The notes under the pieces are model-generated. The model was not told the origin of the DNA. It did no database searches and saw only the letters and a list, made by a program, of their open reading frames with translations. A DNA stretch of 64,000 nucleotides from Klebsormidium nitens (lineage: Eukaryota; Plantae; Klebsormidiophyceae). The translations under genes were made by a program, and so were the position numbers. Where the stretch lies: positions 232,916 to 296,915 of the forward strand of contig DF236992.1 of the NCBI GenBank assembly GCA_000708835.1, written 5' to 3'. The first letter of the stretch is position 1. Each line of letters begins with the position of its first letter. This document shows, piece after piece, positions 11,799 to 57,879 of the stretch.

Positions 11799-13282
11799 AA
11801 GTTGCCCCGATACCGGGTATGATACCCAGTAGGTACGCCGCAGGGCTTGGTAGGAACCGAGGTACGGTACTCGGGAGTCGGTCCCTCGAGTCTTGGTTCA
11901 CCGCACCTGGCCAACAGTACCGTGTACTCCGGGGACGACCGATTTCATGGTCTCGGACTCTGCCGCGTGTTTAGCTGGTACTTGCCGACTCCCCGGCTCT
12001 ACCTCCCGACTTCCTCCGAACTTCCCGCACTTGCGGCGGCTGGCCTGTTGGCATGCAACATTAGGTAGCATACCTAAAAAAGTATTGGCCCTTGAAAGTT
12101 GGGGGAGGACTTGCAAGACCGGGGATTGGCGGAGCAAGTACCGGGTTCACATGCACCGTTCGGGTTTGTCCCTATTCCGCAGACATTGCTTTGGCCGGGC
12201 CAATGATTCAAGAATTCGTCCGTACATCCGATGCATTGAACCGGGCAATACAGTGATTTCTCTAAGTGGCACCGCCGACCGGCCTGGATCCCCCGTGGCA
12301 GAGCTAGAAAATCTCCGTATCTCTCATCAGGTCTGCTATTGGGCGATTGGTGCTACAACGAGCAGTTGCACGACAACTGTCCGTATGTGAACACGCCAAG
12401 CAGGCTACACGAGGCACCTGACACAGGTACCGGTATGTCAACTGCACCATCACATGACCGGAGTCAGTGCCGTCGAACAGTTGCACTGGGCATGATGTCA
12501 TGTTGGAGCATAGGATGAAAATTCATTTGGAATAGGATCTGCCCGGGGACGGCTAGATTGCAAGTGGTTAGGCTCACGGGTCACCTGTAAATTGGGGTAC
12601 GGTACGCACATTGGAGCGCTTCCTCACATTTGGTTGAATTTGGGTTAGGACTTTGCACCGGGCACTTACCTTTAAAGATTGTACAACTTACACTTCTACT
12701 ACGGTAGGACGTACCTATTTTGTTGAACTGCACGGTTGTAATACTTACCCAATGTCAGGGTCAACCGTCACAGGGTGGTCTCCCGGGAGCTTCACGTGTT
12801 GCTGACGTGAACCTCGGGCCGGTGGAACTCGGCGTGCTCAAACTGTGGGAACGAAGAGAGTGCGCCGTAAACTGTAACACGGCATATGTACCGGTACATA
12901 GCCTCGGCGGCTTGGTACTAGTACGACCGGGGAGGCATGCGGCATGCCGATCAATGAAGCGGCGGCATGATTGATCCTTGCAACCCGGCTGGGTAGGTGC
13001 TCCGTACCGTCATTCTGAGTCTGCATTGTGCAATGCAGTGCAACCGGTTTGGGTACCTATACCTATGTGCAGGATGCGCATGGCTGCCGCTGGCTGGCAG
13101 CCGCTCAGCTCTTACAGCTCTAACACAAGCAACTAGAAAGTGACAAGATATTCTGATGCCAGTGAATGGCGTAGGTAAGTCGCGCATCAGGCTTATCCAG
13201 TATTCCGGCTTAATTCACTTCGCACAACGCGCCTTCAATTAGTCGCCTTCTTCCAATTGCGTGTGCAGTAGCCGCCGGCAGC

Positions 13283-16276: not shown

Positions 16277-17505
16277 GTGGCACTCCGCACGAGCTGTGGT
16301 GCTGCTCAGAATGCTACTGAGTAGGATAGTCCGCATGCTCGGAATGCTACTAAGTAAGTAGTCCGCAGGATGTGGAGAGTCGGACAGGAAGTGCTGCAGG
16401 ATTCAGGAAGCAGCCGTAGAGTAAGTGCAAGCGATGAGAGCATCCCTGTTGCAGGGCTACACCGTAAGTTCTCGTCGATCAGTCATGTGGACGATCACAA
16501 CCTGTCACCGGCTTTGTTTCTGCAGTCTGTGCAAGTTGGTACCGTCAGTTTGTATTGTTGTAGGCACGTCTTTTACTTCTTTATCCTGCTTCACTTAGTC
16601 TTCGAAGGTGTTCGGACTTGCGAATCGATGAATATTCGATCGACCTTTCGGTGCCAGGCCTGCCATGAATCCAATGGGAAAGCATGTTACTAATTGTCCC
16701 GTGTAGAGCTAGAGGCAGCTCAGTGATACACTTTGCGCCAGCAGACCATCAGATTATGTTACACAGATTACCTAGCTCAGCAGCTTTTCTGCGACAATCG
16801 AGTCGGTTATAGCGTACAAAATTTCTCTTTAAAGAAAAGCACTGCAATGGTCGCACGCATGGCTATTCTAAGCCTATGACTGCCCGTCGTACACCTGTAA
16901 TTGTCGATCTATTTGATGTCGTTGAGGTACTGCTGTTGCCCTGAGTCGCTGTACATGTGCTTTGAGCGCTGCAATCATGTAATAGCTGAAATAACTCGGA
17001 GTAGTTTTAATTCAAGCATGCAGTATCTATCATATACACTGGCTCATGCAGCATTGAACAGGGTCATTTGCCAGAAACGCTGGCAGAAAGCTTTTAAGAG
17101 CATTCTTGCAAAATGTTGCATGCATGCTGCATTTCGTGATCAAATGATACATTAAACGTAGCCCAAGGGCTGATTCAATTATCCAAGCTGATGACATGAA
17201 TCGCGCAATTGGCCGGACCAGAATGATGCTCATTGGCTGCAAGAGTATCACATGATCGGCAGCATGCGGCGCAGACTTCTGCATGCACCGCGCTATCTTC
17301 GTGACCTCCGTAAGCACTCAGGCTTCGTATGTGTAAAAAGGAGCGGAACGCTGTGTAGGTACCTTACGGGCAAGTCAATATCATTTACAAGCGAGCAATT
17401 TCAGGTGACAGCCGTTCATCGGACTGATAGTCAGATCGGATCACCGAACCTGAATTCAAGACTCGGCTAACCGAAGCTCGGTCAACATCAATGTCATCCC
17501 GCAAC

Positions 17506-33900: not shown

Positions 33901-36900
33901 GTGACTCCTCGAGTCTCCGTGGGGTCCGCATTCGTGCGGCCTGCTGTCGTATGTGTGCTGTGTGCTGCAGGCGCGATTCATTGTGCATGTATGAGTGTTG
34001 ACGCTGACAGCTAAGCTTGACTCTGCAGGGGGACCGTGCGGTACGCCAGCGTGCACGCGCATCTGGGGAGGACGGGGAGCCGGCGTGACGACCTCGAGTC
34101 GCTGGCCTACACTCTGGTATTTCTGTTGCGGGGCAGGCTGCCGTGGCAGGGCTACCAGGTAGGCCGACTGGAGCAGAGCCCGTTGGCGTATTCAAAAGTA
34201 CTGGAGCGAGTTTTGTTGAATCGTTTGCTGGGCATGACCATGTTGTGCAGGAAAAGCACCGAGGGCTGCCCCAGCTTATGCATCTGCGAGTTTTTCTGGA
34301 TTTGTGTTCGGCACGTTTGTTTTAACATCCTGATTTTGCAGGGGCTTGTAACGGTGACTTGACAAGGTTGCAAAGAGACGTTCGGTTTCAGCGATTGAAT
34401 CACCTTGGTCTTTGTTGAGCACCCTCTTCTGTTGCTAAGCGCACAGGTTACCAGCTTCTCAGAGCAGGCAGTCGAGCTGTTCCCTTTCTTGCAGACACAC
34501 CCAAGTGAGTTCCTAATGTGTTGCTCACGTTATCCTGTACCTCCTCCAGGGCGACAACAAGGGCTTCCTGGTCTGCAAGAAGAAGATGGCCACCTCCCCC
34601 GAAATGCTCTGCTGCTTCTGCCCCGCCCCCTTCAAGACCTTCCTCGAGTACGTGGTCAACATGAAGTTCGATGAAGAGCCCAACTATGCTAAGATGATTG
34701 CCTTGTTCGACCACCTGTGCGGCGCCAACATGGCGCTCCGGCCCATCAACACGGACGGGGCCGCCCGCGTCATCTCGCAAAAGGTGCGTCGGTTCTTGCA
34801 GCTACTGTGTTTTGTGCTTCATGAGTTCTGCACAAAGCTCCTGCTGTGGCTTGCGTTCGGGTAGTTCTGCTACTATGCGCAAAGCATGTCCATTGTTTTA
34901 AGTGAGCTGGGTTTCTCTTACCATAATTAGATGCCTGTCCGGATTTTTAGATTCGTTTGATGTTTGTCCAGCATAACTGAAACAGCATCCGGTATACTCA
35001 GCTTGAATATCAGCTTGTAAGGGCATATACGATAGCAGCCCTTCAGCCATGACCGATGCACCATCTTCTGGAGTCTCTAACAGCAGGGATCGGCTGTACA
35101 AAGATAAGCCCCTAGCACAAAGTGTGGCGCACTTTACTATGACTAAATGCTGGCTTTGAATGCATCTTTTCTTTCTCTTAGGTCGGACAGAAGCGGGCCC
35201 GGCTGGCGGTGGAAGAGGAGGAGGACGACGACCAGCCCAAGAAGAAGATCCGGCTAGGCATGCCCGCCACCCAGTGGATCACGTGTTACAACGCCAGGCG
35301 ACCAATGAAGCAAAGGTGCGTCCACAAGTGCTTCGCTTAGTAATGTCTGTGCCTAGTCAGCAGATGCTTCTGCTTATGCGAAGAGTCTCACAGTCGGCAT
35401 TATTCAGTGCTGTCCTTTGGGCTCAGTGGAGTTGGTTGTTGCTTTACAAACTGGGTTGCTTTTTTGGGCTCAGCTTCTCTTACTGCATAGTTGCTTATGT
35501 CACTGCCGAATGACCTGGACTGTTGGTTCAGCGGATAAGCACTTGCACCAGAAGGGGTCAGTTTTTCAACTTGTGCGTTGCAATCGCCTGTGGCAACGCA
35601 CTGCAATTGCTGTTGAGGCACTCGCTCGTGTGTCTCTCAAGATTGCCTTGCTTAAGTGCCGCTTTCCTGTTTCTGCAGGTACCACTACAACGTTGCGGAC
35701 TCACGGCTGGCGCAGCATGTGGAGAAGGGCAACGAGGACGGCCTGAGCATCAGCAGCGTGGCATCGTGCCAGAACTTGTGGGCGCTCATCATGGACGCGG
35801 GGACCGGCTTCACGGCGCAGGTCTACGAGCTGGCGCACGTCTTCCTGCCAAAGGTGGGCTCCCGGCAATAAGAGCCGTGTAGACACCGGCAGCCATGATT
35901 GTTGCATGGTCCAAAGTGCGAGAAGCGCTGACTTTGCTTCTTGAAGTCTTTCGCAGCTGTCGCTTTGCCCTTGTTCAGGGACTAGTGTCATGCAGGCGGT
36001 AGCTAGGAAAGGGCATCAGAGCGCGTTTAGATCTTTGTTTGAAAAAGGCGCATGAAAAGCACCTGATACTTTGTTACAATAGGGAGTCATTTGCTCTTTA
36101 CAAGACCTTTTGGTTCTTGTAAAACGGGGACGAGATGGAAGTTTGGATGCTGAGTCTGGAGTCTCCAGAAAGAGCTTGGGGTCGTTAAGAAGCTTGGGAT
36201 TCGTTGCTTACTTCTGTGTGGGCTTGTGCAGGAGTGGATCATGGAGCAGTGGGAGAAGAACTACTACATTAGCGCCATTGCCGGGTCCAACAACGGGAGC
36301 TCGCTGGTCGTCATGTCAAAAGGTGAGGGCAAGGATCACAAACAAAGCATTGCACGTGACAACGTTTTTCTGGTTGATGGGACCTTCTCGCCGAGCAGGG
36401 GGATTGTTTGCAATCAGTGTTGTCGTCTCAAGTTCCTGTCTTTTCCGCAGGTCTTTGTTTGTCAAAATAAGTTTTTGTCTAGTCGTCAACTATCCGTGGC
36501 TCGATCATCACCTGCTTATGCGCTTGGGCAGGTTTGCGAGCTTCAGCATCTTTTAACCCGCCGATTGCATGTGTGCCAGGCACGTCGTACACCCAGCAGT
36601 CGTACAAGGTCAGCGACTCCTTCCCCTTCAAGTGGATCAACAAGAAGTGGCGGGAAGGCTTTTACGTGACGTCCATGGCCACTGCTGGCAGCAGATGGGG
36701 CGTTGTCATGTCCAGAAACGCGGGCTTCTCGGACCAGGTTGGTCCCCAATCGTGCTCAGTGGGCTGGTCGTGGCTTACTAGCAAGACAACTTTTAGGAGT
36801 CGAAGGATGTTTATTATTCAGGGTTTCAGTCGGCTGGAGTGAAGAATCTATCAGAACGGTGGTTCGATCAGCATATTTAAGAACGTTTTGGCTTTTGGCT

Positions 36901-37908
36901 CGATATAAGCGGAGGGGGAGCACGGCAGAAGAGGGCTTGCTGGGGGCAGAGGCTGTCTCATGGTTGATGATCATCTGCTGTCCTCTTCTGCTCAATTGGA
37001 ATGGTTGAAAGTTTTTACTCTTAGCAAGGATACCAGTCCCAAATCTGCAAGCACGACACACAGCTTTCCACAGCTCGCAAGCAAGCGCGAGTCTTGTTCC
37101 CCGAATTCTCTCGCAGCTTGATGAACCGTTTGGACAATCTGCGCAGGTGGTTGAGCTGGACTTCCTGTACCCCAGCGAGGGAATCCACCGGCGATGGGAC
37201 GGCGGGTACCGGATCACCTCCACCGCCGCCACCTGGGACCAGGCCGCATTTGTGCTCAGCATACCGCGGCGGCGGCCAGCGGACGAGACGCAAGAGACGC
37301 TGCGGACGTCCGCCTTCCCTAGCACACATGTAAAGGTCAGAACTAGTCTGGTTTTAATTGGAATGAGTGTTTTTTACCGGCAGATGCTCCATCTCTGCAA
37401 GTCGGTTGCAGCTCGGGGAACTTGATCGGACTCCTTAATTCTATCAAGGCGATTGCAGTATCTGGTGAATGGAGGAGGGGCCTTCGCTCTGTGCACATGC
37501 CTATTGCAAAACTCACTGTACTGCATCAGTGGGCAATCACCAGGACAAAATATGCGGTTTAATCTGCTTCTCAGGAGATCGTTGTGCCCCGTCGATCGAA
37601 GTTATCGGCACTGGTTTGGTTAGGAAGCCCATTCCTTACCGTTTGAAGTAGAGCTCACCTCGTTGGTTCCTAATCTGCCGTGGCAGGGAGTCCGAGAAGG
37701 CTCTGCCAAATGTCGTGATTGGGAGGCGTTAATATCTTGCCAAAATCCCCACGAGACTCATTATAAAGGGGTCTCGATGTTCCGAGGAAGCATAGAAGCC
37801 CTTTTTTCTCTCGACGACTTTGCTGACCTGTGCCCCCTTCTCTTGCAGGAAAAGTGGGCAAAGAACCTGTACATTGCCGGCGTCGCCTACGGCCGTACTG
37901 TGTCATGA
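30968..37908 (+). CDS. MLK: MUT9-like / photoregulatory protein kinase (plant casein kinase 1-like, MLK/PPK/AEL family), ~735 aa. Exons 30968-31444, 31677-31802, 32003-32076, 32284-32409, 32764-32835, 33283-33377, [33712-33778 OR 33834-33900], 34029-34158, 34550-34783, 35182-35315, 35679-35853, 36232-36322, 36580-36737, 37147-37335, 37849-37908
   Basis: N-terminus MPQLRSSGR; [15 protein letters not shown]; [24 protein letters not shown]; [12 protein letters not shown]; LVDLGLA; [33 protein letters not shown]; family-specific C-terminal domain ([41 protein letters not shown]...YGRTVS). Phases are consistent when exactly one of the two bracketed exons is used. Confidence 0.96.
31448..31489. repeat. 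Perfect 21-nt tandem duplication at the start of MLK intron 1
   Basis: tgtggcatccttgcttctcag x2. Confidence 0.85.
33712..33778 (+). other. Kinase activation-loop exon copy A (67 nt; (A)[21 protein letters not shown](R))
   Basis: Acceptor cgtgcgtgcag and donor gtactg; phase 1 in, phase 2 out. Confidence 0.85.
33834..33900 (+). other. Kinase activation-loop exon copy B (67 nt; (A)[21 protein letters not shown](R))
   Basis: Acceptor ttttggcttgcag and donor gtgact; same length and phases as copy A; 49/67 nt identical to A. Confidence 0.85.
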
Positions 37909-39615
37909 TGTTGTGAGAGAGGTGCCGATTCATTCCTGTACTGTCGTCAGTTGTTGTTCAGATGCGTATAGTGGTCAGCAAATGGAACTGACTTTTTAAA
38001 CGGCAGTCATCCGGCCGAGCATCCAAGGCTTGGCAGAGGGTGCAGTAGGGTGCGGTAGGGTGCAGTGTGTCTGAGTGCAGGAGTCATCGGACATTGTGAA
38101 TCCAAATACGCAACACTAAGATGCATCCCAATGCAAAAATTCGATTCGACCTTGGTGTGCGCCTTTTTTGCGTTGCACAGGTTGCTGTCAATCCGGCAAA
38201 ATCTCTCTGCATGGGTTAACAGTGAAAGCTGCTTAGTACTTCTTACATTTTATACGTGCTGCTGCTTTTCGAGACGGTCAGGTTAAGCCGACTTTCTGAT
38301 CGTTACCTGCCCACATTGGTTTTGAAACCAGGGAGGAAGTACGAACGGCCAAAGCTGCAGTGGGCAATGCAAGCTTGATGCCAGTTCCCCTTGAGCTAGC
38401 TTGCAAGTGGTCGTACACATCCAAGGCAATAGTTCTCATGGCCAGATCTGGGCTTCTGATGGACGGCACTTGAGGTGCGGCATGTGCGAGTCAGGTGGTG
38501 ATGAATGTGATGTTACGTCAAGATTCATTGCATCTTCTCGAGAATGTCGAGCAGCCATGTACGCGCCGGTCGCGAGCCCGCACAAAGTCTATGTTGTGGA
38601 ATCAAATCGTTAGCTCAGGTCTCACATGTGCCGCACAGGCAGGCCTACGAATTGCAAATGCTGAGGCTACGTAGAGTGCCGTCTTCATAACCATCATTCG
38701 ACAGTGACCGTCCGGTCATTGAAACCCCTATCATGCACGTGCATGGCGCGCGCTGCTGTGCAGACGTATGAGCGGTGATCCGACATGCCAGGCGCTGCCG
38801 GCCCAATACATGCATGCACTGGACAAGCTGTGGTAGATATGATTGCTGTGCAGTTTTCTGCGCGCCACGACCATTCTCAGGATGAGCATGCCGGAGAAGA
38901 TCTTACTTCAATCAACGTTTGCTTGGTATGACCCGCGCACCAAATCAAGCGGGCGGCACCAATAGACGGTGGCAATACATTATCATACGTGCTAGACTCT
39001 CAGTATGACAGCAGACACTCGAAGTTGGCTCCGACTTCAAAAGATGGGGTGACTCTGACGGCTAAGCAGGCCCCGGCAAGTATACTCATGCTATTATCCA
39101 AACGGTCGGACGTATACAGACTATGACCATGCACTCTACGGGATGACAAATAAACAGAAGAGAATTTGAGCAGGAATGCTCAGCCCGAGGAGACCATGCC
39201 CATGCAGCGACTTTGTCACAATTGAGTGAGATTTTCGAGAACACGAAACATCAAGATCACTTGGAGCGGCCTGACATTGCGACCCCAGATTGATCGATGT
39301 TGACAGCAGTCTTTCCAGGCAGTCTTTGAGGAGAATAACAGACCACCTGTGCGCGAAGGGCGGATCGTTCCCTTCCTCGCCGTCATAAACGCTTGCATCA
39401 TCCGCAACGCTTGAGGTTGTGGTTGGACATGGGGGATACCAAGACCTCGAGGAGAGTGATTCGAAAGGTTCTCGGATCGGGTAGCTGCTGAGCTGACAGG
39501 TTCCAAATGTCCTAGAGAAGTTAACCAGCTGCAAGAGATCCAAAGCCCAGCTGCTCGGACCTTTTGGGAACTCCTTACCAGCCAGCCTAGAAACCCGGTC
39601 TTGCGTTTAGGCAAG

Positions 39616-42600
39616 ATGGCCGAAGCGAATGTGCATTGCCTCTACGAAGATGAAGAAGGAAGAGTGCAGGAGGTTTTTGTGGAGAGGATCGGAAGTGACT
39701 TGGAGAACCTGGATGCACTGAGAGAGAGCGTGCTCTCGAGATTGGATGAGAAGGGCATAAGGCAAAAGGTGATTGATACACCGCCTACCCTTTCGTCTAC
39801 CTTAAGCAACAGAAAGAACTGTCTTCTCTTCCATAAAGGCTCCTCGCTTCGAGAGTTGCCGAAGTCTTTTGTAAGTAGAACAGCAAGCACTTCCTTCAGC
39901 TTTGTATGAAGAACTTGAGGATTTTCAAAACGTGATGACCTATGCTTGTCACTTGTTGCAGGAGTTCCTGGTCACCGATCTGAACCGGAGGGATCTTCTG
40001 GATGGTGATCTTGCAACAGCATTGAGAAGAGGCCAGCTAATCCTTTTCACTCAGTCAAGAGGTAGGGTTTTCTTCCGTTCCAATGTTCAACCTGCGTGCA
40101 GCCCCGTGGTTACAACGGTCGAGGCCCCTCCCTTGGTTTCTTGCGAACCAGTTTACCTGACATGTGAACAAGGAAACGAGACGGTGCCAAACCTACGTTT
40201 GAAGCTTCATTCTCCCACGACCAGCCGCCTAGAGATTGTTGCTTTCTCTGATCTCTGCAAGCAATAAACGGCAGATTGAACTCCTGCTTGTCTTGTATGG
40301 TATGGCAGACTTGCCCATTCCGGAGGGATCAGCAATATCCACGCCGCTGCGCTTTGTACCAAATCACAAGAGCCTGACCAAACGAGGCCAGGAAACATAC
40401 ACAAGTGAGCAAATGTTTTCAATGACATGCCTTCCAAGATCTGGAAAACTCCTTTTCCTGTTCCGCCTCCTTTCTGATCGTTTTCACATCGAGACTTCCA
40501 AGAGGGTTGCTTCGTCTTTTGGTCTTCTCTTTAGAGACCTCTCTTGTCTGACTCGATCTGCGCACATGGTATTATCTCACGTAATATTTTTCCAGGGGCT
40601 TGTTGACAAAAGTTCTGAACGGATACAATGCCATGGAAAAGTAAGGAGGAGTTTTGGAAATTTGCATGAGAGTTTCCAATGCAGAGTTTCGAAATCAGAC
40701 GTCTACAGAGGCCTAAAAGAAAGTGCTTTGAGTACAAGAAGAGACGATGCTCAGCTTTTCCATGTATGAGGAGCTTGCGTGCAATCAAACACTCAGCCAT
40801 TGAATATTTTCACTGCTTCTGTCTTGCAGCTGAGGATGGAAAGAGTTCCCTGGTCAGCGCAGCCGGCGAGCTCATCGACAATGCTGCAGATGCATCATTG
40901 TGGAATCCTGCCGAAGGACTGAGAAAGTGGGTCAAGATTGTATTCTGCGAGACCCCTCGACGCAAGGTATGTCGTCACAAAGAAAATTGAAGTCTTCAAA
41001 GATCCTTCCTAAGCAGAAAGCGGATCAGCGACCCAGTCTGCATTTGATGTGCTACATTACCCAAATGCGTCATCTTGCAACTCAGGACTCCAACTCCAAG
41101 GTCTCCGAGGAAGCTGTGAAAGACCTTCTTTACATGAAAAGTAGAAGCGCACTTTCTCATGGTCACACGGTAGTGTGCTCCGCCTTGATTTGTTGACGAA
41201 GCTCTCTAGGCAATATAACATTGTAGAGGAACGGAAGGTTTCAACTCCGTGTTGAGGCTGAAAGCCTGATGTCCCTCTAATCATGTGCAGCTCGCCCTGG
41301 CAGTCTTCGACAAAGGCAAAGGTTTTGAGATAGACGACTTCGAGGCCTTTGCGACCATGAACCTGAGCCAGGAAGATCGAGGCAACTCCCAGAAGCCTGC
41401 CGATGAGGACTCGGAGAGTCTGTACACGTCTGACAACCAGATCTCATTCCACGGGGTGGGCGCGAAGACCGCGCTGTTCTTTGCGGGGCCTGAGTTCCAC
41501 ATCATAAGCAGAGCCGCGGGTTGCACGGGCGAAGAAGTGACTCACTTCTCGATGTCTGAGGTGCGTGAAGCTTCCTCTTCGTCACATTTTACGAAAGTTA
41601 TTGCAGATAGAGACACGACTGGGGCAAATAAAAATAACCGAAGGGGAACTGCAGTCCCGACTTTTCTTCAGACCGAAGAAAGAACGAGCGCAAAATCTTT
41701 GTTGAAAGATCAATCTTTCCGCTGACAATGAAAAGGACCTCTTCGTCCTGATATGACCAGTGGGAATAGGGTCCGTTCAAGCTGATTCTAATTTGAAAGT
41801 TCGACTCCGAACCATTTCTGAAGGGGTATCGTCGCTTTTGTCTTTCCATGCTTCTTCTAAATTAGATAGCTAACTCCATCATGTCCATTGTCAGAAATTT
41901 CAATCTGACCTGGTTGGTGCTCTCGTGCAGGTCGAATTTGAGAGGCGCCAACGAGAAAATGCCCCTGTTTACGAAGGTAGCTCTTCGTTCCTTTCCGTCC
42001 TGCGGCCCTGATTCTTCGAATCAACTGAGATTCTCGCAGCTTGTTGGACCGCTGATTCTATTCACTTCATCCACTGTCGAGGCGGCTCTTGATTCTGGAT
42101 TATTGTATACTGCGAGACCAAGATCCTTATCACCTGCCAGATTTTACAGGTCTGAAAGAGAGAGACTCAGAATATGTTCGGAACCGTCACCGTCGATCTG
42201 CCTGCAGGCAATGCGTCAAATATCTCGAGCCTCTGGGAGATTTTGGAGACGATCATCCCTCAGGCTAAGACGAACCTGCCGAACATTGATGAAGCAGTGG
42301 CTGAAGTGGCTTCGCTGAGGCATTTCACGGTAAGTGTCCCTGAGTTGCGTCTGCAAGTCGACCGTCCGTTCTGAACAAGAATATTTGTTGTGTTTTCTGC
42401 TGCAATATGATTCAGCTGACTCAGAGAAGACGATAGGGACACAGCACTATTGTTTACTCTTGTGCAAATAAAACAAGAGAATGCTTCAACTGACGACCTC
42501 CGTTTCTGTTCCAGATCATCGTTGTTCCAGAACTTTACGCGGCCCACTCCAGGGAGATCATCGGCGATCGAGGTTATGAGTTCAGCCGGCAACTGGCGGC

Positions 42601-45600
42601 TATGTTCTACTGGAAGATGCACGGCGTCGGGCGCCTACAGCCAGCTCTAAAGACGACATCCTCCGTGAAAAGGGAGTTGAACGAAAGCAAAAAGCTCGAA
42701 CTGCAGGTTAGAAGACGCGCATATTGTTTACTGGCATCTGTGAGAGCCCGTGATGACTTCTTGTCCTGAGCTGCGATCCCTGTATCATCTCGTTCTAATT
42801 CTATTTCAGAGTTAGTTAAAATAAAGCCTTTGCAGAGAAATCGCATTGTGGTAACATTGTGGCGAAAGCCCTAGATTCCTTTCCTATTCCTCGAGGGGAT
42901 GCTGCAGCATTGATGGACCGCAGACGCGTAGAGGCCTGGAACAGGACAATTTTTGTCTGTTTCAATTATGCAGTGTCGCTTTGTTAGGTTAGATACGAAA
43001 AGGTGACGTCATTTGCCAGCAAGTCGTGCGCTGCTCTTTCCCAAACACTCGCTAAAGCAGGAACGTTTTCGCTTCCGTTTACTAGGTATCCTTTTACCAG
43101 CAACAATCCAGTCGGAGGGCTGTTCCCGAGCTGCTCCCCGCACAGACGACTAGCTTTCCTGGAGAGGTCACGTGGCGGCTGAACGAACTGAACGCTGACG
43201 TCATCAGCCAGACGCTGGATCGTGCTTCACACCTCTTTGAGGTCACGGTCAAGCCCTTGGGGAAGTCGAAGGCTTACCTCCTCCACTTCTACCACAACAT
43301 GAAGGACGGGCGCGAGAGCCTTCCAAGGAGATACAACCCACCGGTGAGCACCTCCGGTTATTTCCCCCCCGCACTCTCTGTCCGCCTCGTTGGCAGCCCG
43401 TGAGCCAGATTGCTTCCACCGGTTCCGTCACAAGTACCATATACTCCTGGTTGTACCAACTGCATTGCTGGTCAAGCAGCTAGACTTATATCGCGCATTC
43501 GTAGCAGAGTCTCAGCTGATGGTTCTTTAGCCTTAGTGCACTCCGAGCCAATGAGCTGGCCAGGGAGTGGTGTTCAGAAATCGAGACTCGGACCTGTCGG
43601 CCGCGTCAACATAGGTTTCCAAACACGTTCCACAAATTGGGATCAACCCCAAGCGAACCTAAAATCTACTTCCTGTCTCTCTGCAAGGTGGTTCGACAGT
43701 GCGACCAAGACCGAGATGTCAGTGCTCACATTTCCCCTGCGTCAGGCTGGGAGTATGGGCTCCGTGCTCCTGAGACGCCGCTTTACGACCTGGTATTTTG
43801 GAATGGCCGTCTGGTTCCTCACACTCACTTGCACGGCCTCAGCAAATTCAGGTCTGCTACGAAGAGGGTCTCCGATGTGCACTCCGACTGCCTCAGAAGG
43901 TGAGCCAGTTCTACCAAGCGCCAGAAAGTTTGTAAAAGGACTGGCATTCTATTGAGTAGCTAAAATTCAAAACAACATGCGTCCTATCCGCTTGATTTTG
44001 TCTTCGACCGTGCATAGGCTTGCCCCTCTTCTTGCATGACGATTCGAGGCACGGTCTCTGATACGACTTCCTCCGTTCGACTGTGACGATGCATCCTGCG
44101 ATGCTAGTTGGTAATGCCCAGAGTGCCTACTCGATCGTCCTCAGGATCAATCTGGATTCTGACTATTGCTCTGCTTTTTGAAGTGCCGGAAGGCCAGTCC
44201 TTACATCGCAAGTCCTTTCATCGCAGGATCACCGGAATGCTCTTCATCAATGACAGCTACAGCATCGATCAATCAAAGCAGCACGTCTCTGAAGACTTGA
44301 AGGCCCTTTTCTTGGGCCTCCCTCACGACGAGACTATCTTCGAGCCCCGGGGAGCTTCAGAGTGAGTTTCTCTTTCATGAGCAGAATAAGAGTTTTGACT
44401 TGGAGAGATTGCTTGTGATCTATGATTAGACCCTATGCTGTAGAAAGACTTTCCTGTTGTTTTGAACAGAAATTCTGCTCCCACAAAAAACTTTCATTTT
44501 TGCGTAAATGCATCGGAGCCGCTTTGGCTCAAAGTAAGCAAAAGTAGCACTGTTCTTCCATTGCAACAGGCTGCTTTCCCCTCTTGTGTCAGTCAAGATT
44601 CCGGCTCCTAACGATGAGAGCTCAAGTATCCACCTTCAAATTCTGCAGGGCTTTCAACAAATGGGTTCGAGCATGCAGCAAGTTTGACGAGATTCTGACC
44701 TTCGAAGATCCGGACCGCGTTCACGACACGGACGCGCCCAGGACCCGATTCAAGCGCGTTAGCGTCGCCGGCAAAGAGAAACGGATTTTCGAGGTCGGAG
44801 ACAAGGTGACGTTCCGGAGGAGAGGTTTCAAGTTCTACGGAAGGATCGAGTCGCTGACCTGTCCTTGGAAGACTAAGGAGGACAAAACGGTCGGATCGAC
44901 AGGTACCGCTTCCGTCAGGCAGGCACCAGAGGTAAGAGCGTAAACAAAACCACTTTTTCCAAGCTAAGAACAACGTTGAAATGTAAGAAGAAGTTAATAC
45001 ATTCACCACGGTCATCAGCATTGAAGCATCAGAAATAAGTTTAATCCTTCTAACTCTGGACTGTCGGACTGGAGTCTCTTCGAAGTTGTGAGGGCCTTCT
45101 TGTATCATGCGAGACATTTATTGATTGCGTCTGCGTTACGGCGTCTTGAAGTTGAGAGAGGAAAAGAGCCCACTGATCGAATCATTAGCAAGATTTGAAA
45201 CGTCCAGAAGTCCTGGCAATGCGATCTCCAATATATACAGATGATGCACGATAGCTGTATAGAAGCCGTTTGAAGTTGAATAGCAAGGCGACCTCCTGAA
45301 TCACGTCTCTACTGATTGCATCATCCTCTGATGATCTACAGGAGCTCAAAAACTCTGCTGAAGTTCAGATCGATATCTACGACCTCGGATCAGTGCTGAA
45401 CGATTGCGAGTGGAGAGGTGTTCTTACGGAACTGCATGACAGACTCTGCGTAGAGACTTTCGAGCTCCTCTGGCTCACAGCAGATAACGCTCCCATGGAC
45501 GTGATGGGCCCTAGAGTATTCTCTGCGCCGATCAGCAACAAAACCGAGCGGTTCCGGCTAAGGGCCATCAATAAGCAGGGGTAAGCATTGATGATGTTAA

Positions 45601-48600
45601 TATCTCCGCCACTCACTGAAGGTGTTACATTTAGATCTGGTTTCATCTGTCAAAGAATAAATGTTCATAAGATCTCTCACAACTAGCGACTCGTCAGCGT
45701 ATACATTTGTCACTGTCAACACGGAAGGCTTGAAAATAGGAGACACAAGTCTGATGCCACTCCTCGTCTGATGCAAGGAACCGTAAGATTGACAACCGTC
45801 TTTATAGTTATGAAACCCATTTCGCATCTATCAAGGAAGCAATAGAAACTGGCATTGTCGTCGTTCCGAATCCCTTGCTTATAGCGAAGTGTATAGACCT
45901 CTGTTCCTCGTTTTGTTTTGCAGGGAAGAACTGCAGACGCATCAGGACGGTAAATGTTCCTTAAGAACCAAAGTCGTTCTCACAAATCTGGCAAGACCAG
46001 ACTCATGTCCGGTGACCCAATTCCTCTGCAACATCGGTCACGTCCTGAACCTACCCGCCATCCAGAAAGCGGGAAGCTACCTCGTCACTGCCTCACTCAT
46101 GGAGTACGGACTCTCGCCTCAACAGCCCCTCGAGGAGACTTTCCAGGTAAGAAGATGCTCATGGTAGCCTCCGCGAGGTGTCGCTTACTGTGGATTGAAG
46201 GCTACAACACAATCTGCATGTAAGTAATGATCACTGCAGAACGACTTCAGTGTTGGAGCGGCTCCAATCCGGCCTTGTTGGAGGGTTGTTTTCTTGTCAT
46301 GACGCGGCTGCTTCATAGCCGCCGTGGATTTGAAGGTCATCTGTCATACACTGTAGAATTGCTTTGCAGCAAGAGAAAGATCACTTGCCGATATCAACTG
46401 AACGATTGACGATGATGATTCGTGCTCCTATACGCATTCCATACATCTTCTTGTATTCAATGCTCCGAGAGCGACTCGCTTTTTTGTACCTTTTGTAACA
46501 TTACTTTGCTCTGGAACAGGTCAAGGCAGGACTTCCGGTCGCATTCTCTGCACGACCGCCGCAGATAGTCCTTGTCGGCCATACGTTCTGCCTCCGCCTG
46601 GTTCTTCAAGACGCGTCCAAAAACGACTTCTCTGACGAAGATGGCCTTCGCGACCTGCTGCCCACATTTCGACCAGAGCTTCAAGCTGTGCAGGAGGGCT
46701 TCGCTTTCCACGTGGACCAGATGAGCGTGCTGATCGAGGATGGCTCCGTCTGCTTGCGAGGCGTCGTGGTGACGGTTTCTCTCACGAGCGTTCCGAGCCT
46801 TCTTGAGCTGGTCGTAGCTCTCCCAGGTTACAAGCAGCTTGATACCAGCCCGGCACGGTTGTCAGTTCAAGCTGGGCCAGACCAGACGCTAAGTTTCCTA
46901 GAGCTTCCTGAAGCCATGGAGAATGGCAGCCTTTTCAGCCTCACCGTGGAGCCAAGAGACGCGTACGGCAACCAGACCACCTTCATCAGGGGTGGCTCTG
47001 CACAATTGGTCGCACAATTTTCGCCGGGCCTTGTCACCGGTACGATAAGCCATGAAGTCAGCAGCAAAACCGGAAGAGTGGAATACTATGGACTGGTCGC
47101 CCTTGTCAAAGATCGTAGCGCTTGGGAGAATAGTCTCAGCGGAATCGTTGTAGACGTCACAGTGGGTTTGTGTGATTTCAACAAGTCGGGCACCGCCCTG
47201 GAAGCGCGAGCGCGCTCCCGCATTCTGCCAAGGCGCGCGCCGGCTGCGCTTGGTTTCCTCCCCGAGGGTCAACTCTACGGATCAACTGACGGGGGCCCTA
47301 TCGAGCTGGAGCTGCCTGCGGGAAGGAGTATCGAGAACTGGCAACTCCTGGCTTGGGACGAGGCGGGCCGTCAAGTCGAGGAGCTTGCGAGCGAGCCACA
47401 AGTGAGGATCTTAAGAGCTGGCGGCTAAACCGGATGCCTTCGATCTACGGCTCAACTGTGCAAGGCGTACTGAAACGATGTAGCGTCCAAGATCCTGGTC
47501 GTAAGTTAGTAAGTTCCACCTGGTCTGCTTCCTGTTCTTTTGTGTCGCTTTCGGCTGCTCAATAAGCTACTAGTGTGGATGAACCGAGCGTAAAGCCGCT
47601 TGGAAACGTCTTCTTACTTCCGTGTCACTTTGTTTGATTTCTGACTTCAAACCCTGAGAGTTATGCTCGCATGTGGCCGTTGTGATCCGAGTTGTTGTTG
47701 TAAAGATTCCTCCCCGACTGCCGTCGCGGGGAAGAAAAGTTCATTTGCGACAAAGTAAGACCTTTGAAGAGGAAATGCCAAGTATATTAAGAAAATTGCC
47801 ACATGAGGAAACAGCAACTGTATCAAATGATTTCAAGATTCCGCAGTCCAACTACTGAGGTCTAGGGTCGTTTCTATGCAGCCCTTCAACTGCTCTTGGA
47901 ACCAGACCTGCGATCTGCGAACCGGAAAGCTGCCGCCGTACCGCATGCCCACGTCTGCCAGCAAACCGCCGGAGCAGCTTCTACTGACGTGCAACAACTC
48001 AAGCCTCTGCTGTCGCACCGCCCTGAAAGCCCAGCCCCTTGAACCCTCAGCCTGGGTTTGCGAGGAGAACGGAACGGATGGTGCCGCGGGCCAGCTGATC
48101 GTGCCGTGCGGGCAGTCCCTTGGGCATCGCCTGCGCATCTTTCTTGGCGACGTCTACGGGAATGCGTGTCAGCCGCCTGTGGAGGTTGCAATGCCACGAA
48201 TCTCTCTGCGTGACGAGCGGGTCTCAGGGGATGTGACTAGGCAGGGCTGGACTCCCCAGCGTGACGGAGCTGTCTGGTATCTGCCCGCTGCGAGACTACT
48301 GGGAAAACATGGTTCTGTTCTTCAGTTGAGGGTCGACGATGAGAAGGATTCCTACAAGAGCGCGCTTCTAGAGATTCGTCTCGTCAGGGTAAGGCTTTGA
48401 CATTTCGGTACCAAATGCTTGGCAGAAAGAAGAAACGTGCAGAATTTTACCACTCTAATGCCGAATGCGGCTTTCCCAATATGGAAGAAACTTGTGGCAT
48501 CAGCTGTACAGGTACGTACCGTTTGAGAAAAGTAGCAGCCAGGATCTGACAGATCTCCAAAGCCCTTCACTTCCTTTCAACTCAAGGTCATTTTGAGGAG

Positions 48601-51600
48601 GGCAATCTTGAGTTATCTCTGTAGATTGCTGATCGGGTTCTCGACGTGATGACGTTTCTCAGGTCAGACGAATGCAAGGGATGTTCAGACTTGACGCTTG
48701 CTTTCGTGCTTCAGGGTCTTCCGCATCATGTCGGCATCAGCCTTGATCCTAGCCCCGGCCCCACTCAGATGGAAGTTCACTTTCCGGTGAAAGATCGGTA
48801 CCGCTTTTCAGTCATTCGAGCAAGCATCAACGATGAGGCCGACAACAAGCTGCAAGTCAAGGGGAGGGTCCTAATTTCTACCGATGACGCCGACACGGAC
48901 GTGAGCGTCCCGGCTGCAAGAAACAGCCCCGACCGGCCGTGCTCACTTGTTGGCTTCAATGCGGACGCCGTCTTTGAAGACGTTCTCTTCGAGTGCACAG
49001 GGATGAGAGGCAGCGAACTCGAGAGAAGGGTGCTCAAGTTTGACTCAGACGGGGTGGAAAGCGGAAGACTCGTTCTTTCAGTGTCGCCTACGGACACCGT
49101 CGCAAGTCTTCATGCCTGGTTGGACTTCGATTCTGTGGAGAACTCGCCCCAGCAAGAGAGCGACCTCGATGCAAAGTCTGTTGCCAGTGGGAGCCGTCTT
49201 TCTTGCATTCGACTGCGGCTTCTGAATTCAGCAGGCAAAGACACGGATCTGAGCGGAGTGCTGCCGGAGCGGAGCCTTGAGTTCACGCTGCTATCCCCTT
49301 CCCGCCAAGTTCTGTTGCCCAACCCGTCTAACGAACTCAAGTCCAGAGTTCTTCAGAGTGGAGAGTTCGTCTTTGAGCCTTCCAAACCGGATAAGTTGAC
49401 GCTTACAGAAGCCGGATCGCACAGTCTGACGGCCGTGTACACCGAGCGCCGCTCCGATCTGCTTCCAAACCTTCAGGAGTGCGATCGCACGGTGGTGAAG
49501 AAGCTGTTTCTTGAAGTGATTCCGGGCAACCCGCACCAGCTTCAGATTGCTGAGAAGCCCGAGGGGCCCCTCCTTGTTCATGTCGGAAAGGAAGACGAGG
49601 GCGAACTTGTCGAGTGCCTGCCGTGCCTCTCTGTCCGGGTCGAGGACTGCTTTGGAAACCTCGTGCCTGCGGGTCTCTGGAACGAGCAGATTTCAGCTGA
49701 GGTCATCTCAAAAGATCCCTCGGTTGGAGCACCAATGCTGGACGACTCAGGCTGCACGGTGAGCTGCGGGGCCGACGGGTGCGCGCATTTCAGGACTCTG
49801 TCTTTCTCCTTAGAAGGATGCACCAGAGACGGGACCGCGGCTTGCAAGCTGCGCTTCAAGTCTGGTCAGCTCGTGCCGGCGGAGACTGTGCTCCTGGTGA
49901 CAAACGATTCCGCTCTGAGACGAAAGATCGCCGAGTGCACGGAAAAGCGAGCGAAGACGTCTAGAATGGCCTCCGAACTGGAAGAAAGTCTGCTTCAGGC
50001 GGAGGCGGACCTCCGAAACTGTCTGAACAAGAAACGGGATAGTGAAAGAGCAGCCGAAGATATCAAGTCGAGGCTACCTGCAGCTGATACAGAAGCCCTC
50101 GCGCGAGGCCAACGGGCTGACGAGCTGATTCGTAATCATCAGAGAGCTCGCGATGCGCTGCCACAGGAGCGCAAGGCGCGCGCTGGATGCACCGTCGAGA
50201 GCAAAGTGTCGGGGCTGCTAGGTTTTTATGGCCTGTTGTGTGATTTGGCGGAGATCGAGGACGATAGCAGGGCACGTGTCATTTCCTGGTACTTTGGACA
50301 GAGTAGGCTCGAGATGGTGGTCTGCCGCTCGGACGCCATCATGGCCCTAGCTGACGTGGATGACGGGTTTCGCGTTCTCGATAGTTCGATGGTGAAGTCG
50401 TTTGTGCCAGCGGGGGCAGGCAAGCTGCAGCTCACGGTCCCACACGGAAACCAGAGCCTTCCTGAGGTAAGGAGTCCAGTCCACAACTTGATGTCATCTC
50501 CCTAGGTCGCTGAGAATGCTGTCTTAGTAAGGATAAAGTTCTTATATTCTAAGCTGCATCAACATACGACGATCGGTCTGCTGAAAGCATCCCATTGACC
50601 GGCAGGACAGCTTTCTGCTTAAACATAAGAGGCAAAGTTGCTTTGTATTCAAGCTGGATAAAGTCAGAATTTTAGATTCAAGACAGTCTATGCGAAGTCC
50701 TATTGGCATCAATCTGCTTCTTTTTCGATCTTCGTCCACTTCCTGTTGATTCGGAACTCTCGACCTCATGCAAGAAGCTGAACTCCAGGAATATATTGCT
50801 CGACTTGGTCAGGGGTTTTAAAAACTTCTTTCTCCAGATGAAGATCGTTGTTCCTGCTCGTTCTCCCTCAATCGGCCAGTAAGACGTGACTGCATCTGGA
50901 AAGCCCCTCCAGATCGTCGTTCAACTCCATTTCAACGCTACATCATGCGACGTGAGATAATCATTAGGGGCGATCGATTGCAGGTTTTGCAAGGCGTTCA
51001 ACCGGAATTGGCAGTCAACGTCCTTCGCCTGCGGGAGGAGCACGAAGCCTTTCGTGCATCCGTCTTTTGGGCGCTTCTTGGTAACACCTTGCTGCTGCCC
51101 AAGAAAGTCGACGCCATCGCTTACAGGAGGTTCCTAGTTCGGGTACGTTGTTACTACAGAAACTTTCTGCCTCGAATATCTAGTGTCACGAGGTCAAACC
51201 TCTGAAAACTCCTGTTGCGCTCTTAGCTGCGTGTCCAGTTGAAGGTAAGTACACTACAGTTTAGATCAAAGCGAACAGATGCTGCTGATTCAGCTGCTGC
51301 TGATTTGCTACCTGATGGCTCCTGGCACACCGAATAAACATGTCTCCGTTAAAGTTCCATTGCTTGCGCAAGGTCGCGCTCGGACTCTTTGGGATGTTGT
51401 GAGCAGATTAGCTTACTCGGTTCAGATCGGTCTATTACGCTTCATTCTCCCCGTTAATCGGACTCGATCTGGATGTTTCAATCTTTGGGGGATAAGTGAG
51501 GAACGCGAGTTGAATTTGAAAAGAGCAGTACTAAACTCTCTAACTTGACAACTTTTTGGAGCGGATACTCCGCAACATGGTTTAACCAAAATTACTTGTC

Positions 51601-53106
51601 TGACAGTCGATATCTGATCAGGGGTACTCTCGCCGATGAGCGAGCGCTGAGCAGCGTTTTTTGACTAAAACTCGGTCTCGCATTTCAACTATCTACTGTT
51701 GGCTTGCAGGACATGATGAAAGAGTGTCCGACCATCCTGACGTACGAAGACGGGTGCCACGTGGCCGCCTCGGGAGAGACGGGCGGCAGGTGCTTCCGCG
51801 CCCCCGCGACCATCCAGAATCTGCCCGCCTTCTTCGGCTCCGGCCCGCGCCCCGCTGCCGCGCGCGAGCATCAGATCATCGATACTCTGCGGGCGCTTAG
51901 ACGTGTGGAAAAGGAACTGGAGAAGCTGTGAGTTACGACCAGCAATGAGTTATCCTTTGAGACGGGATGCAGATGCAAGTGGAATTGTTCTTGACGCGAA
52001 GCATGCCTGCATCAGCAAAGTTTGTTGATGCCGCCCGAGTTAAACCTGCAACCCTCAGGGAGACGTAAAGGATTGAGGACGTCTGACCCCCCCAGAAGAC
52101 TCAATCGAGGAGTATAGTAACGTCATTCTAGAAAATCATGGAAGCGAGATTTTCTTGAGCAGAGGTCCATAATCATAACTTGGCCCACATATTAGGAGGT
52201 AACAACCGGTGAATATATGGCCGGACCAGTTGGGCACCACCTGCTTCTTGCTGGGAAACACTCTTCGAGGGAAAGCGTATAATAGCAGATAGAGGAATTT
52301 CCTTGCCCCCCATACCCTTGGAACGGGAAGCATTTGACCGGTGACAGATCGTCTTCTCCTTTCTTTAGGTACCACATGGAGCTGCAGGCAGCCGCAGAGC
52401 GAGATGCCGGAACGCGATTATTGGGGCCCCGTCTTGAAAAGGAAAAGGAGGAGGTGAGAAGCGACTGAACTTCTTTACATCAAACCGGATCGGCGAAACA
52501 CCCTTGGATCACGCCCTGTGACGCTAACGCGTCGGCGTCCCATTATAACCACTTAACCGTTAGTCCTGCTAAAATTGAGTTTGCCGAGACGGTAAGCTTT
52601 AGAAAGCGGGTTTCCAATCTGTTTGTCTACTCAAGTATGGCGCGAGTGTTCGAGTGCTCGAATGTGGGTCGATCCCCGGAACGTGGCGGTGATTTGCTGG
52701 TTCACCGGGTGATGGCCCTCGTTGGTTGTGTGGGCCCAAACTGCTTGCGGCAAAAGTCGGCTCTAAAGAGAAGGCAGTTTCTGACCCGGACATAATGTTA
52801 GCTCATTCTCTTTCAGCCGCGCTTGCACCGCGTACACTCAGGCCTGAATCTGCGCTTCGATTGCAGATTCAGCGCCTTGACGATAAGCTTAAGAGACTCG
52901 AAGGGCAGCTTTTCAAGACCGGCCCGATCACGGCGCCCCTGCCACAGCAGATCAAGGAGGAACCCGCGGACGACTCGGAGGCCTTTGATAGGGAGGAAGC
53001 GACCCCGAGCCGGGGCGAAAGACGTGCAAGGGAGGATGGTGCCGCGGAAGGCGACGCCCCAGTCACGAAGAAGAGAAGGTCGGAGAGGCCGGGGACAAAG
53101 AAGTGA
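39616..53106 (+). CDS. SMCHD1: SMCHD1-type protein (UBL-like N-terminus, GHKL ATPase, transducer, BAH-like domain, long linker, coiled coil, SMC hinge), ~2102 aa. Exons 39616-39768, 39962-40061, 40309-40404, 40830-40966, 41291-41560, 41931-41976, 42208-42329, 42515-42706, 43086-43343, 43688-43899, 44227-44361, 44649-44931, 45342-45580, 45924-46146, 46520-47401, 47882-48388, 48715-50466, 50984-51142, 51710-51927, 52369-52453, 52867-53106
   Basis: GHKL motifs AAGELIDNA, AVFDKGKG, ISFHGVGAKTALFFAG; transducer FSRQLAAMFYWKMHG, VFWNGRLVP, RITGMLFIND; hinge LAEIEDDSRARVISWYFG, VFWALLGNTLLL, CPTILT; coiled-coil segment IAECTEKRAKTSRMASELEESLLQAEADL. The 21 exons join in frame (6309 nt). A few internal boundaries (42208, 42706, 44649, 52369) are best guesses. 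Confidence 0.9.
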
Positions 53107-55026: not shown

Positions 55027-57387
55027 TCAAACGGTGTCCGCATCGGGTTCAATCCTGGAACTAAGACCGTTCCGAATGAGGAGCTGACAATACGTTTCAG
55101 CATATTCCTGCAGTCCCGAGACAGACAATAAGATCAATACATATTCATTTCCAAGTGGCAAGAGGGCCTCTCAAAAGCAAGAAAGGAAAGCGAAAGTCTG
55201 GATGCCAAAAATTCTGGACGTAGTGAAGAGCTGACCTTTGAAAGTCGACCTACTTTAATCCCAACTGCGACAGACACAGAAGAGTGAAGGAGAAGCAGTG
55301 CAGAAGAGCCACAGACCTTTGCTAGACGAATAGGAATTGCAAGTTTCATGGGTAGCACAGACCTCTCACAGTAAGACTTCTTTTGAAAACAAGAACGGCT
55401 CGAAAGTAGCTTTTGCATTTTGGGCTGCATCCAAGTATACCTCGGGCTCTCCCTTTAAGGCCGCACCGAGAGGGGAGCTTTGACCTTGACAAGAACAAAC
55501 GCGTGAAAAGGGGCAGTTCCAAATCCAAGTTGACTACCTCCGCTGCAATGAGTCAGGCACGCTCTATCTTTGCTCGTAAATGCCATCAGAGGAAGTCGAC
55601 TATGTCCCTGCAACAGTACATCACAGGTCCAGCCCCCAGGGCCAGCCCAGCTAAGAACGACACAAAGAAGCGGTTCAAATATACCTAAAAGAAACAAGAA
55701 ACAAGGAGTGACTTTTCGGAATTTAGTATTATCTCAAAACGGGCTCACCTTCACACAGACGATCACTATTCCAAAGCCTTTTACTTTGGATTCTTCAAAT
55801 ATCCCGCGTGCCGCTTCGGACGAGACGTTTGGGACCACCCTGGGCAAGACGTTGGTGACTGCACACTCAAACGACGTCCTGAGAAAGCCTGCCAGACATG
55901 TACAATCGTGCAAAAGATACATGCGCTGGGTTGTCCAGACTTCAAGGACAACTGATTGTTGATGAGGCGCCCTTGATGCAGAGGCGCCCTTGAGGGAAAG
56001 AAAGATCACATATTCCAGACAAACATTTCGCCAAAATCGATTGCAGGACAAAGGACGGAGACGTATCCAGTCCAAAAACACTTACTCTGGGTCAGGACAC
56101 AGGGTCACTGTTATGAAACAGGGCCAGTAATACATTTTTCATCTCAGATGAAAGTCTGCACTTACTTGCGGCATACTCCTCGCCAACAGCAAGCCAGACA
56201 ACAAAGAAGCACCTAATACCTGCTCACACTACTTGTCGTGAAAGTTCCAAAGAAGCGCAGAAAACGTTTGTCCAAACATGTCCTGAAAATCACCGAGCCT
56301 TGCAATCATGAAGTTGCCTTCAGAAGAAGGGCCGGAAGGTCTGGCACCCACCTCTTTTCTCAGTGTGCTTGGGGCTGTCAACCAGCAGGACACGGAACTG
56401 ATCCCCGCCGCCTGTCCGCTTGTTCTGCTTCTCCTTGCTTCCCTCCCCGCCTGGTAGAAACACAGTTGCTCATGCTTATGTGAGAAAGGCATCAAAGTGG
56501 ATGGCACCAAATGGGACTGTACAACCGCAGGAAACTTCTCATTCATGTATGGTACCCCCTCTCGAGCCCCAAGGACACCAGAGTCAAAAAGTGAATGCGA
56601 AATTGGTGGGGCTTTTGGTTGGTGGCACTCAGAAATCCAAGAAACACAATCCAGCTCAACCACATGGAGGCAATCTACCGCGTGCCACAAGTTAAAGAAA
56701 CTTGCGCGGGCTCTGTGCTTATGAATCTTTAATAGTCAATCAACAACCAGTTAAATGTTTGAAAGAACACTGGAAGAACATTCCGCCGTTTAAAGAGCAA
56801 ACATGGCCCACAGATAAACAAAAAAGGGCAGAGGGACCATGCTACTATGAAATCAGAAACTAACGAAGATCTTTTTAGATTCACAAGGTGGTGATTGCTA
56901 AATGCCGACCAGGTGAGGGGGAAGATCAAACTTCTCTTTCAGCATGCAGCAGCAACTGGCATATTAAGTATAGCAAGGTCCATGAAGTAGTACCTGATTC
57001 TGTTTGGTACAGCTTTTCCAACCACGAGGTATCAAGCGCAGGCGGCTTCTCTAAGACGCCAGCGCCTCCAGGCCTGTCAAGCACGCCTGCCCTGGCAGCT
57101 CGAACCTTCACAGCCCCAGAACTCCGACACTGATCTGGGTTTGCTTGCTTAACATTAAACCCAGATCTAGATCTGTCCTGATGTAACGAGGGGGAGTTGC
57201 TACCATCTCGACCCCAGCAACCAAGGTCCAACTTGCTGGACCTCTGCTGGCGGAGCGGAGGCGAGAAAAAGCTGCCGGATGTAGAAGCTGGTCCACTCGC
57301 ATATGCTCTCTCATTGGCACTGCTTCTCAAATGGGCGTGAAGGCATGCTGGTGACAGGGTGCTTGCTGCTGCAGCGGTGGCCGCCAT
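55027..57387 (-). CDS. Plastid-targeted ClpS-like (Clp protease adaptor fold) protein, ~227 aa. Exons 56994-57387, 56352-56450, 55749-55858, 55027-55107
   Basis: Transit-peptide-like MAATAAAASTLSPACL...; GVLDRPGGAGVLEKP (like the plant ClpS1 N-terminal GVL(D/E)xP); core QFRVLLVDSPKHTEKRVTNVLPRVVPNVSSEAARGIFEESKVKGFGIVIVCVKEYAETYCQLLIRNGLSSRIEPDADTV follows the ClpS pattern. Phases consistent (684 nt). Confidence 0.8.
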
Positions 57388-57879
57388 TTTTCTCTAGTAA
57401 AGGTTGGCTCCGCCAGGTGGATGTGCTCTTGATTTGTGGCAGCCAAGTTGGAAGTGGCAGCTCATGCACCACCATCATGGATGATTGGGCCGCGCCTCGC
57501 CCGGAGTGAACGGTAACGATGAAGTCATTACCGCACAGATAAGCTCTTTTGTACCCAGATTGCTCCCGCAAACATGACCCAAAACGTTAACGGCATTCGC
57601 CTAGTTTCTTAGCGAAATGTCCACCGGCACTGGCAGAAGCTATGTACCCAGGCAGTCTGCTCTGTCCACTTATGACAGGATTCCAGATTCTCCTCGTGGA
57701 TTCTGAGCCTCAAGCTCTATGTTGTCTGTGCCACGTCATCCGTCCCCTAGAATTTCTTTTTCCTTCAAAGTTCCTTCTGCCTGTGCAAAAGCTCCGTTCT
57801 GCCAGCCGTTCAACAACTTGTACAAGGCGTTCTGCAAACCGGGAACGGCCTTTCCTTTTGCAAGCAACTTTTTTTCGCC
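57388..57879. promoter_or_regulatory. Putative bidirectional promoter and 5' UTR region between ClpS-like (-) and RPE (+)
   Basis: The two divergent start codons are only 492 nt apart. No specific promoter element was identified. Confidence 0.55.

Follow-up and report, generated by a model that had tools for sequence, protein, structure and literature searches.

A full-length member of the SMCHD1/GMI1 family in the early-branching streptophyte alga Klebsormidium nitens

Proteins of the SMCHD1/GMI1 family act in epigenetic silencing, as known for SMCHD1, and in double-strand-break repair, a role of GMI1 and of SMCHD1 too. SMCHD1 is medically relevant through X inactivation, imprinting, type 2 facioscapulohumeral muscular dystrophy (FSHD2), and arhinia; GMI1, its relative in plants, has received little study. 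Here, we describe a member of this family from the culturable alga Klebsormidium nitens. The gene occupies 39616..53106 on the plus strand of a 64,000-nucleotide window (positions 232,916 to 296,915 of contig DF236992.1, assembly GCA_000708835.1), and all its features lie on that strand; unless stated otherwise, coordinates are those of the window. It has 21 coding exons and 20 GT-AG introns, and its curated product is 2067 amino acids (aa) long. We note that the gene is intact and full-length but belongs to a known family whose presence in the green lineage is already established, so the K. nitens gene alone answers no open question. As a conservative full-length member from an early-branching streptophyte alga, it offers a useful bridge for aligning the proteins of animals with those of plants and for working out how the ancestral protein was laid out.

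The fusion of GHKL, S5, and hinge domains has been described as "a distinct ancient eukaryotic lineage" (PMC2292703), and GMI1 as the likely Arabidopsis orthologue of Smchd1 (PMC3707822). Given that likely orthology, animal and plant types may be one family whose members evolved at differing rates. Arabidopsis GMI1 (At5g24280, 1600 aa) shares a GHKL ATPase and an SMC hinge with the K. nitens protein and also comes from Streptophyta, but seed-plant GMI1 proteins, at 1487-1633 aa (PMC4607528 supplement), are about 450 aa shorter. DMS3, a protein of the Arabidopsis DDR complex (6OIS) reported as angiosperm-restricted (PMC4607528), is homologous in its coiled coil and hinge, where it shares the stretch ...YLG...VVCR[SN], but it is a hinge-only protein without an ATPase and scores 12-22 bits in comparisons that give the SMCHD1 hinge 43-50. 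MORC ATPases belong to the same GHKL+S5 superfamily (HATPase_c_3; PMC2292703) but have no ubiquitin-like (UBL) domain, immunoglobulin (Ig) array, or hinge, and no MORC chain among solved structures matched the K. nitens protein at E up to 1. The gene is probably the K. nitens orthologue in the SMCHD1/GMI1 family, whose members join a MORC-type GHKL-S5 ATPase to an SMC hinge, and a conservative member that shares one ancestral gene with animal SMCHD1 and land-plant GMI1.

The curated gene begins with an ATG at 39616, and its stop codon ends at 53106. All 20 introns are GT-AG, with lengths of 185-567 nt (mean 364), and the reading frame is open across 2067 codons. Its product is present at NCBI as "hypothetical protein KFL_000430380 [Klebsormidium nitens]" (2030 aa; hereafter the public model). 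The gene is annotated only as hypothetical, and we found no discussion of it in the literature, as far as this was accessible. Mapped to the window, the public model fits exactly in 20 exons, and the curated gene is this model plus one restored exon. A first-pass annotation of the window had proposed a 21-exon gene here, and the mapping together with the conserved extra exon returned the same start, stop, and exon count. It had also described a full-length frame, which held, with a product of about 2102 aa, which did not: the curated product is 35 residues shorter, and the longer version probably reflects a slightly different choice of splice sites.

The N-terminal part of the protein is an SMCHD1-type ATPase module. 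In HMMER comparisons with all solved-structure sequences, residues 50-429 of the public model matched human SMCHD1 24-580 (6MW7, chain residues 51-419; E 1.5e-17, 65 bits). A putative UBL domain at the N-terminus covers residues 1-85 (exons 1-2, 39616-39768 and 39962-40061; 39616..40061). The part aligned with the human UBL, a domain defined in PMC6620310, is residues 50-85, which correspond to its second half; the first half is assigned putatively. The GHKL ATPase core follows at residues 85-372 (exons 3-8, 40309..42706), where Pfam HATPase_c_3 scored 33 bits against a cut-off of 25 (E 7e-8). Catalytic positions were compared using human residue numbers converted from 6MW7 chain numbers via the position of its E147A substitution. 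In motif I (ELIDNA), the catalytic base E130 corresponds to human E147 (alanine in 6MW7), and the metal ligand N134 corresponds to N151. D169 and G173 of motif II (DKGKG; DxGxG) correspond to D184 and G188, FHGVG from residue 215 (GVGAK from 217) corresponds to motif III at human 234-238, and the threonine of RHFT at 308 corresponds to T320 of motif IV. With all four motifs aligned, the Pfam score above cut-off, and the 6MW7 match, the N-terminal GHKL ATPase claimed in the first-pass annotation was borne out. The probable transducer, or S5 domain, spans residues 373-539 (exons 9-11; 43146-43356, 43746-43899, and 44227-44361) and carries FWNGRL at 460, whose glycine corresponds to human G478. 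K511, within DQSKQH, is a candidate switch lysine.

At the other end of the protein, the end of exon 17 and exons 18-19 (49900..51927) encode a coiled coil and an SMC hinge at residues ~1646-1960. Residues 1698-1893 of the public model matched the SMCHD1 hinge structure 6N64 (residues 27-216 of 222; E 5.6e-11, 43.3 bits), in agreement with the C-terminal hinge predicted earlier. The Arabidopsis DMS3 structure reached 12.4 bits (E 0.12) in the same type of comparison. A profile built from four algal hinge sequences gave 50.1 bits for SMCHD1 (E 2.3e-12), 21.8 bits for DMS3 (E 1e-3), and 18-19 bits for prokaryotic SMC hinges (E 7e-3). These scores lend some support to the view that the K. nitens hinge resembles mammalian SMCHD1 more than DMS3, the one solved plant hinge protein. 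In this region, IEDDSRARVISW lies at 1764, and the glycine motif (G-x-x-G-G) reads GETGG at 1909. The latter aligns with mouse SMCHD1 G1872, G1875, and G1876, the hinge glycines mutated by Brideau et al., while mouse R1867 aligns with a histidine in K. nitens. The hinge is mixed in character, with SMCHD1-like stretches (IEDD...VISW) alongside a DMS3-like one (MVVCRS, compared with AVVCRN in DMS3).

Taken over its length, the K. nitens protein follows the domain order of human SMCHD1, with a putative UBL, the GHKL core, a probable transducer, a long middle section, a coiled coil, and the hinge, and the two are of similar size (2067 and 2005 aa). SMCHD1 provided the best solved match at both ends, and the sole specific one. 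The catalytic glutamate and asparagine, DxGxG, motif III, the motif IV threonine, FWNGRL with its G478 equivalent, and the hinge G-x-x-G-G are all common to both. Six of the seven motif pairs that the first-pass annotation had drawn with human SMCHD1 were found again, five of them residue for residue in the HMMER alignments and FWNGRL through the match of exon 10; the seventh, FYGRIESL, falls outside the solved structures. Overall, the two proteins are only distantly similar, at 65 bits over the ~370 residues of the N-terminal module and 43 bits over the hinge. The structure alignments of the public model contain no shared five-residue run; FWNGRL, in exon 10, is shared. The human gene also has 48 exons, compared with 21 in K. 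nitens. We note that animal-specific matters, among them partners like LRIF1 and roles like X inactivation, are not transferable to the alga.

The resemblance to SMCHD1 could also be read as evidence for two old subfamilies, with the K. nitens gene in an SMCHD1-proper lineage shared with animals, GMI1 as a paralogue, and the SMCHD1-proper lineage lost, or diverged beyond recognition, in land plants. If true, klebsormidiophyte algae would retain an ancestral, animal-like lineage, and two GHKL-hinge subfamilies would once have existed in the green lineage, of which land plants lost the SMCHD1-proper one. The hinge scores are consistent with this alternative, being far higher for SMCHD1 than for DMS3 with both the profile and the single sequence, as is a length like that of human SMCHD1 and unlike that of seed-plant GMI1. 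It also draws on comparisons by language-model features, in which the clusters nearest the whole protein were named SMCHD1, had lengths of ~2000 aa, and carried the SMCHD1_S5 and Ig_SMCHD1 families (0.99); the next clusters were of ~1500 aa and named "SMC hinge domain-containing" (0.98). However, DMS3 is a derived, hinge-only protein and so a poor stand-in for GMI1, and the gap in scores may stem from unequal rates of evolution. The N-terminal 700 aa were nearest to a Streptophyta-dominated cluster that carries SMCHD1_S5 and Ig_SMCHD1_1st (0.96), so plant proteins share SMCHD1-specific domains, which counts against two subfamilies. The DMS3-like stretch in the K. nitens hinge counts against them as well, and our searches found no second K. 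nitens GHKL-hinge gene, although a distant one would be beyond their reach. We consider two subfamilies unlikely. The first-pass annotation had offered both a distinct SMCHD1 subfamily and a gene linking the two groups. What stood of its interpretation is an SMCHD1-architecture protein resident in an algal genome, given the introns, orthologues, and shared neighbours, and the MVVCRS stretch fits the linking gene better than the separate subfamily. The reading preferred here, one family, is also closer to the linking gene.

Relatives of the gene were found in uncultured algae. An exhaustive protein search with the 626-aa translation of exon 17 (48625-50502), the largest exon of the gene, over 1.84 billion representatives at a threshold of E 0.001 matched five: the K. 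nitens protein and four fragments, all from one clade. The fragments come from two Joint Genome Institute (JGI) metagenome contigs, 3300060284 Ga0590114_0003609 and 3300060285 Ga0590115_0002871. Collinear matches in the contigs of related uncultured algae, here L001 and L002, were found for 20 of the 21 K. nitens exons in L001 and for 18 in the covered part of L002, at 28-86% protein identity. Introns were unmatched, and this conservation of exons without introns shows purifying selection on the coding exons. The neighbourhood is shared as well. A highly conserved gene at 32-38 kb of the window adjoins the SMCHD1-family gene in K. nitens and in both related contigs, and on the other side the relatives have genes resembling those at 55.7-59.8 kb of the window.

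These observations bear on whether the gene came from outside, by recent horizontal transfer from an animal or other eukaryote or through contamination of the assembly. The visible resemblance to animal SMCHD1 is all that speaks for such an origin. The gene has 20 spliceosomal introns of host-like size, its guanine-cytosine (GC) content matches the rest of the window, it sits within a 297-kb K. nitens contig, and its similarity to human SMCHD1 is low. Orthologues in two related algal contigs keep their exons in the same order and have flanking genes in common with K. nitens, and these observations effectively rule out contamination and recent transfer, which we regard as extremely improbable. 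Residence in the algal genome, for which the first-pass annotation argued from the introns, is upheld by introns, algal orthologues, and shared flanking genes together.

Several results weigh against assigning the gene to the SMCHD1/GMI1 family as an orthologue. Pfam SMC_hinge had no match to the K. nitens protein at E up to 1. Pfam SMCHD1_S5 matched two separate pieces at 19.1 and 12.2 bits, each under the cut-off of 27, since several exons share the domain and it was scored in pieces. In sequence, the K. nitens clade stands apart, with no relatives of the 626-aa exon at E 0.001 beyond the Klebsormidium-like contigs. The exhaustive search stayed within the clade because the 626-aa exon is too divergent. 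Word-index searches with the whole protein, the GHKL region, and a fragment of L002 returned only the query's own clade; such searches need several shared five-residue words, and since the structure alignments have no shared five-residue run with the mammalian protein, the word index cannot reach it. A metagenome scan with an alignment of the hinge exon found no relative. The proposed orthology to GMI1 draws on the literature and on soft evidence. Finally, the gene's words were absent from 24 RNA runs carrying the species label, and four of these runs, compared with 39600-45599, gave no contigs, in both cases in assembled contigs that miss weakly expressed genes.

The RNA results raise the possibility that the gene is silent or decaying, present in the DNA but no longer used. 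The lack of a trace by words in the 24 runs and of contigs in four of them would be expected of such a gene. However, the runs hold only assembled contigs, which are blind to weak expression, and silence is therefore not implied. The 2067-codon frame is open, the catalytic and hinge motifs are intact, and it is the exons and not the introns that are conserved (32-81% protein identity) in comparison with long-diverged algae. We consider a silent or decaying gene very unlikely.

The product of the gene probably keeps the ancestral long layout of UBL, GHKL, transducer, long Ig-like array, coiled coil, and hinge. By homology with SMCHD1, the hinge, with its G-x-x-G-G intact, would join two chains permanently. 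The N-terminal GHKL heads, together with UBL and transducer and with intact catalytic motifs, would dimerise on ATP and then hydrolyse it, and long Ig-like arms would connect heads and hinge. Such a homodimer would act as an ATP-driven clamp on chromatin, with a part in silencing or in the repair of DNA or in the two together. What the sequence itself shows is gene structure, domain order, catalytic residues, and homology; that the K. nitens protein dimerises, hydrolyses ATP, and binds chromatin, and what biological role it has, are predictions from the better-known relative.

A practical point concerns the public model, which is without a conserved exon of the ATPase transducer. Its exon 9 continues as far as a donor at 43400 and is spliced straight to 44227, reading 43 nt of intron (43357-43399) and passing over exon 10 (43746..43899, 154 nt), the transducer exon with FWNGRL. 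The skipped open stretch encodes GWEYGLRAPETPLYDLVFWNGRLVPHTH. Exon 10 is in frame with an exon 9 that ends at 43356 (donor 43357, acceptor 43745), and its identity to L001 and L002 is 72% and 78%, including a block of 17 identical residues. Its conservation and frame led us to the curated gene of 21 exons and 2067 aa. Among solved structures, exon 10 matched only 6MW7, in the collinear place at 451-470 (FWNGRLVPHT compared with FWNGRLIPYT).

Between transducer and hinge, two regions could be delimited. The post-transducer region, residues 539-787 (exons 12-14, 44649..46146), takes the place of the weak BAH-like region described in SMCHD1 (PMC4628070). It is conserved at 32-57% in L001 and L002, and its AlphaFold model, with a predicted local distance difference test (pLDDT) score of only 37, offered no usable fold. 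Residues ~788-1645 form a putative array of Ig-like beta-sandwich domains encoded by exons 15 and 16 together with the initial two thirds of exon 17 (46520..49900). The exon 15 model suggests two all-beta (beta-sandwich) domains at modest confidence (pLDDT 66) and matched only generic folds of the tandem bacterial-Ig-like kind, with a template modelling (TM) score of ~0.5. By language-model features, exon 17 was nearest to clusters with Ig_SMCHD1_6th/7th/8th. The Pfam models Ig_SMCHD1_1st to 8th had no match in the Pfam copy searched, which may lack them.

The C-terminal end, residues 1960-2067 (exons 20-21, 52369..53106), is taken from the public model and has a coiled-coil-like and acidic stretch followed by a basic tail (KKRRS...). 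Exon 21 is weakly conserved, at 33-34% in L001 and L002. Exon 20 (52369-52453, 28 aa, coiled-coil-like) was the sole exon with no collinear match in either contig; it is the least certain exon of the gene, included solely on the strength of the public model. A model from a splice-site and codon-usage gene finder skipped real exons of the UBL and hinge and was dropped in favour of the public model and conservation. An 18-nt micro-exon at 51227-51244, proposed by the same gene finder, was unsupported in the orthologues and was rejected.

In the relatives, the locus is duplicated. Contig Ga0590114_0003609 has the SMCHD1-like gene twice, head to head, with starts ~1.1 kb apart (L005, 407-8160 on the minus strand and 9287-20275 on the plus strand). 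The K. nitens gene, of which the window holds one copy, is about as distant from one of them as from the other. In Ga0590115_0002871, a 3' part with coiled coil and hinge is all that is present where the second copy would lie (L003, 9874-11734 on the plus strand). This hinge-only copy corresponds to K. nitens residues 1626-1961, shares ~55-60% identity with each of the three full-length hinges, and consists of three open exons with frames open over 314 codons, at a distance of 1.4 kb from where the full-length copy starts. It is changed at conserved spots, with VVCLS in place of VVCRS and GETSG in place of GETGG. It has the DMS3 architecture and may be a DMS3-like gene or a remnant. Comparison of the flanks (window 32000-38000 and 55700-59800 with L001/L002 14500-21000 and L003 14900-20200) showed that this second copy sits where the K. 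nitens gene does and runs the same way. The full-length copy beside it, next to the conserved flanking gene, is inverted relative to K. nitens, an arrangement indicative of local duplication with inversion in the relatives.

A head-to-head duplication with one hinge-only copy is a possible natural model for the origin of DMS3-like proteins. In Amborella, the DMS3-like and GMI1-like models, scaffold00021.223 and.222, are consecutive gene models (PMC4607528 Table S2), an arrangement that would fit an origin of DMS3 via partial tandem duplication of GMI1.

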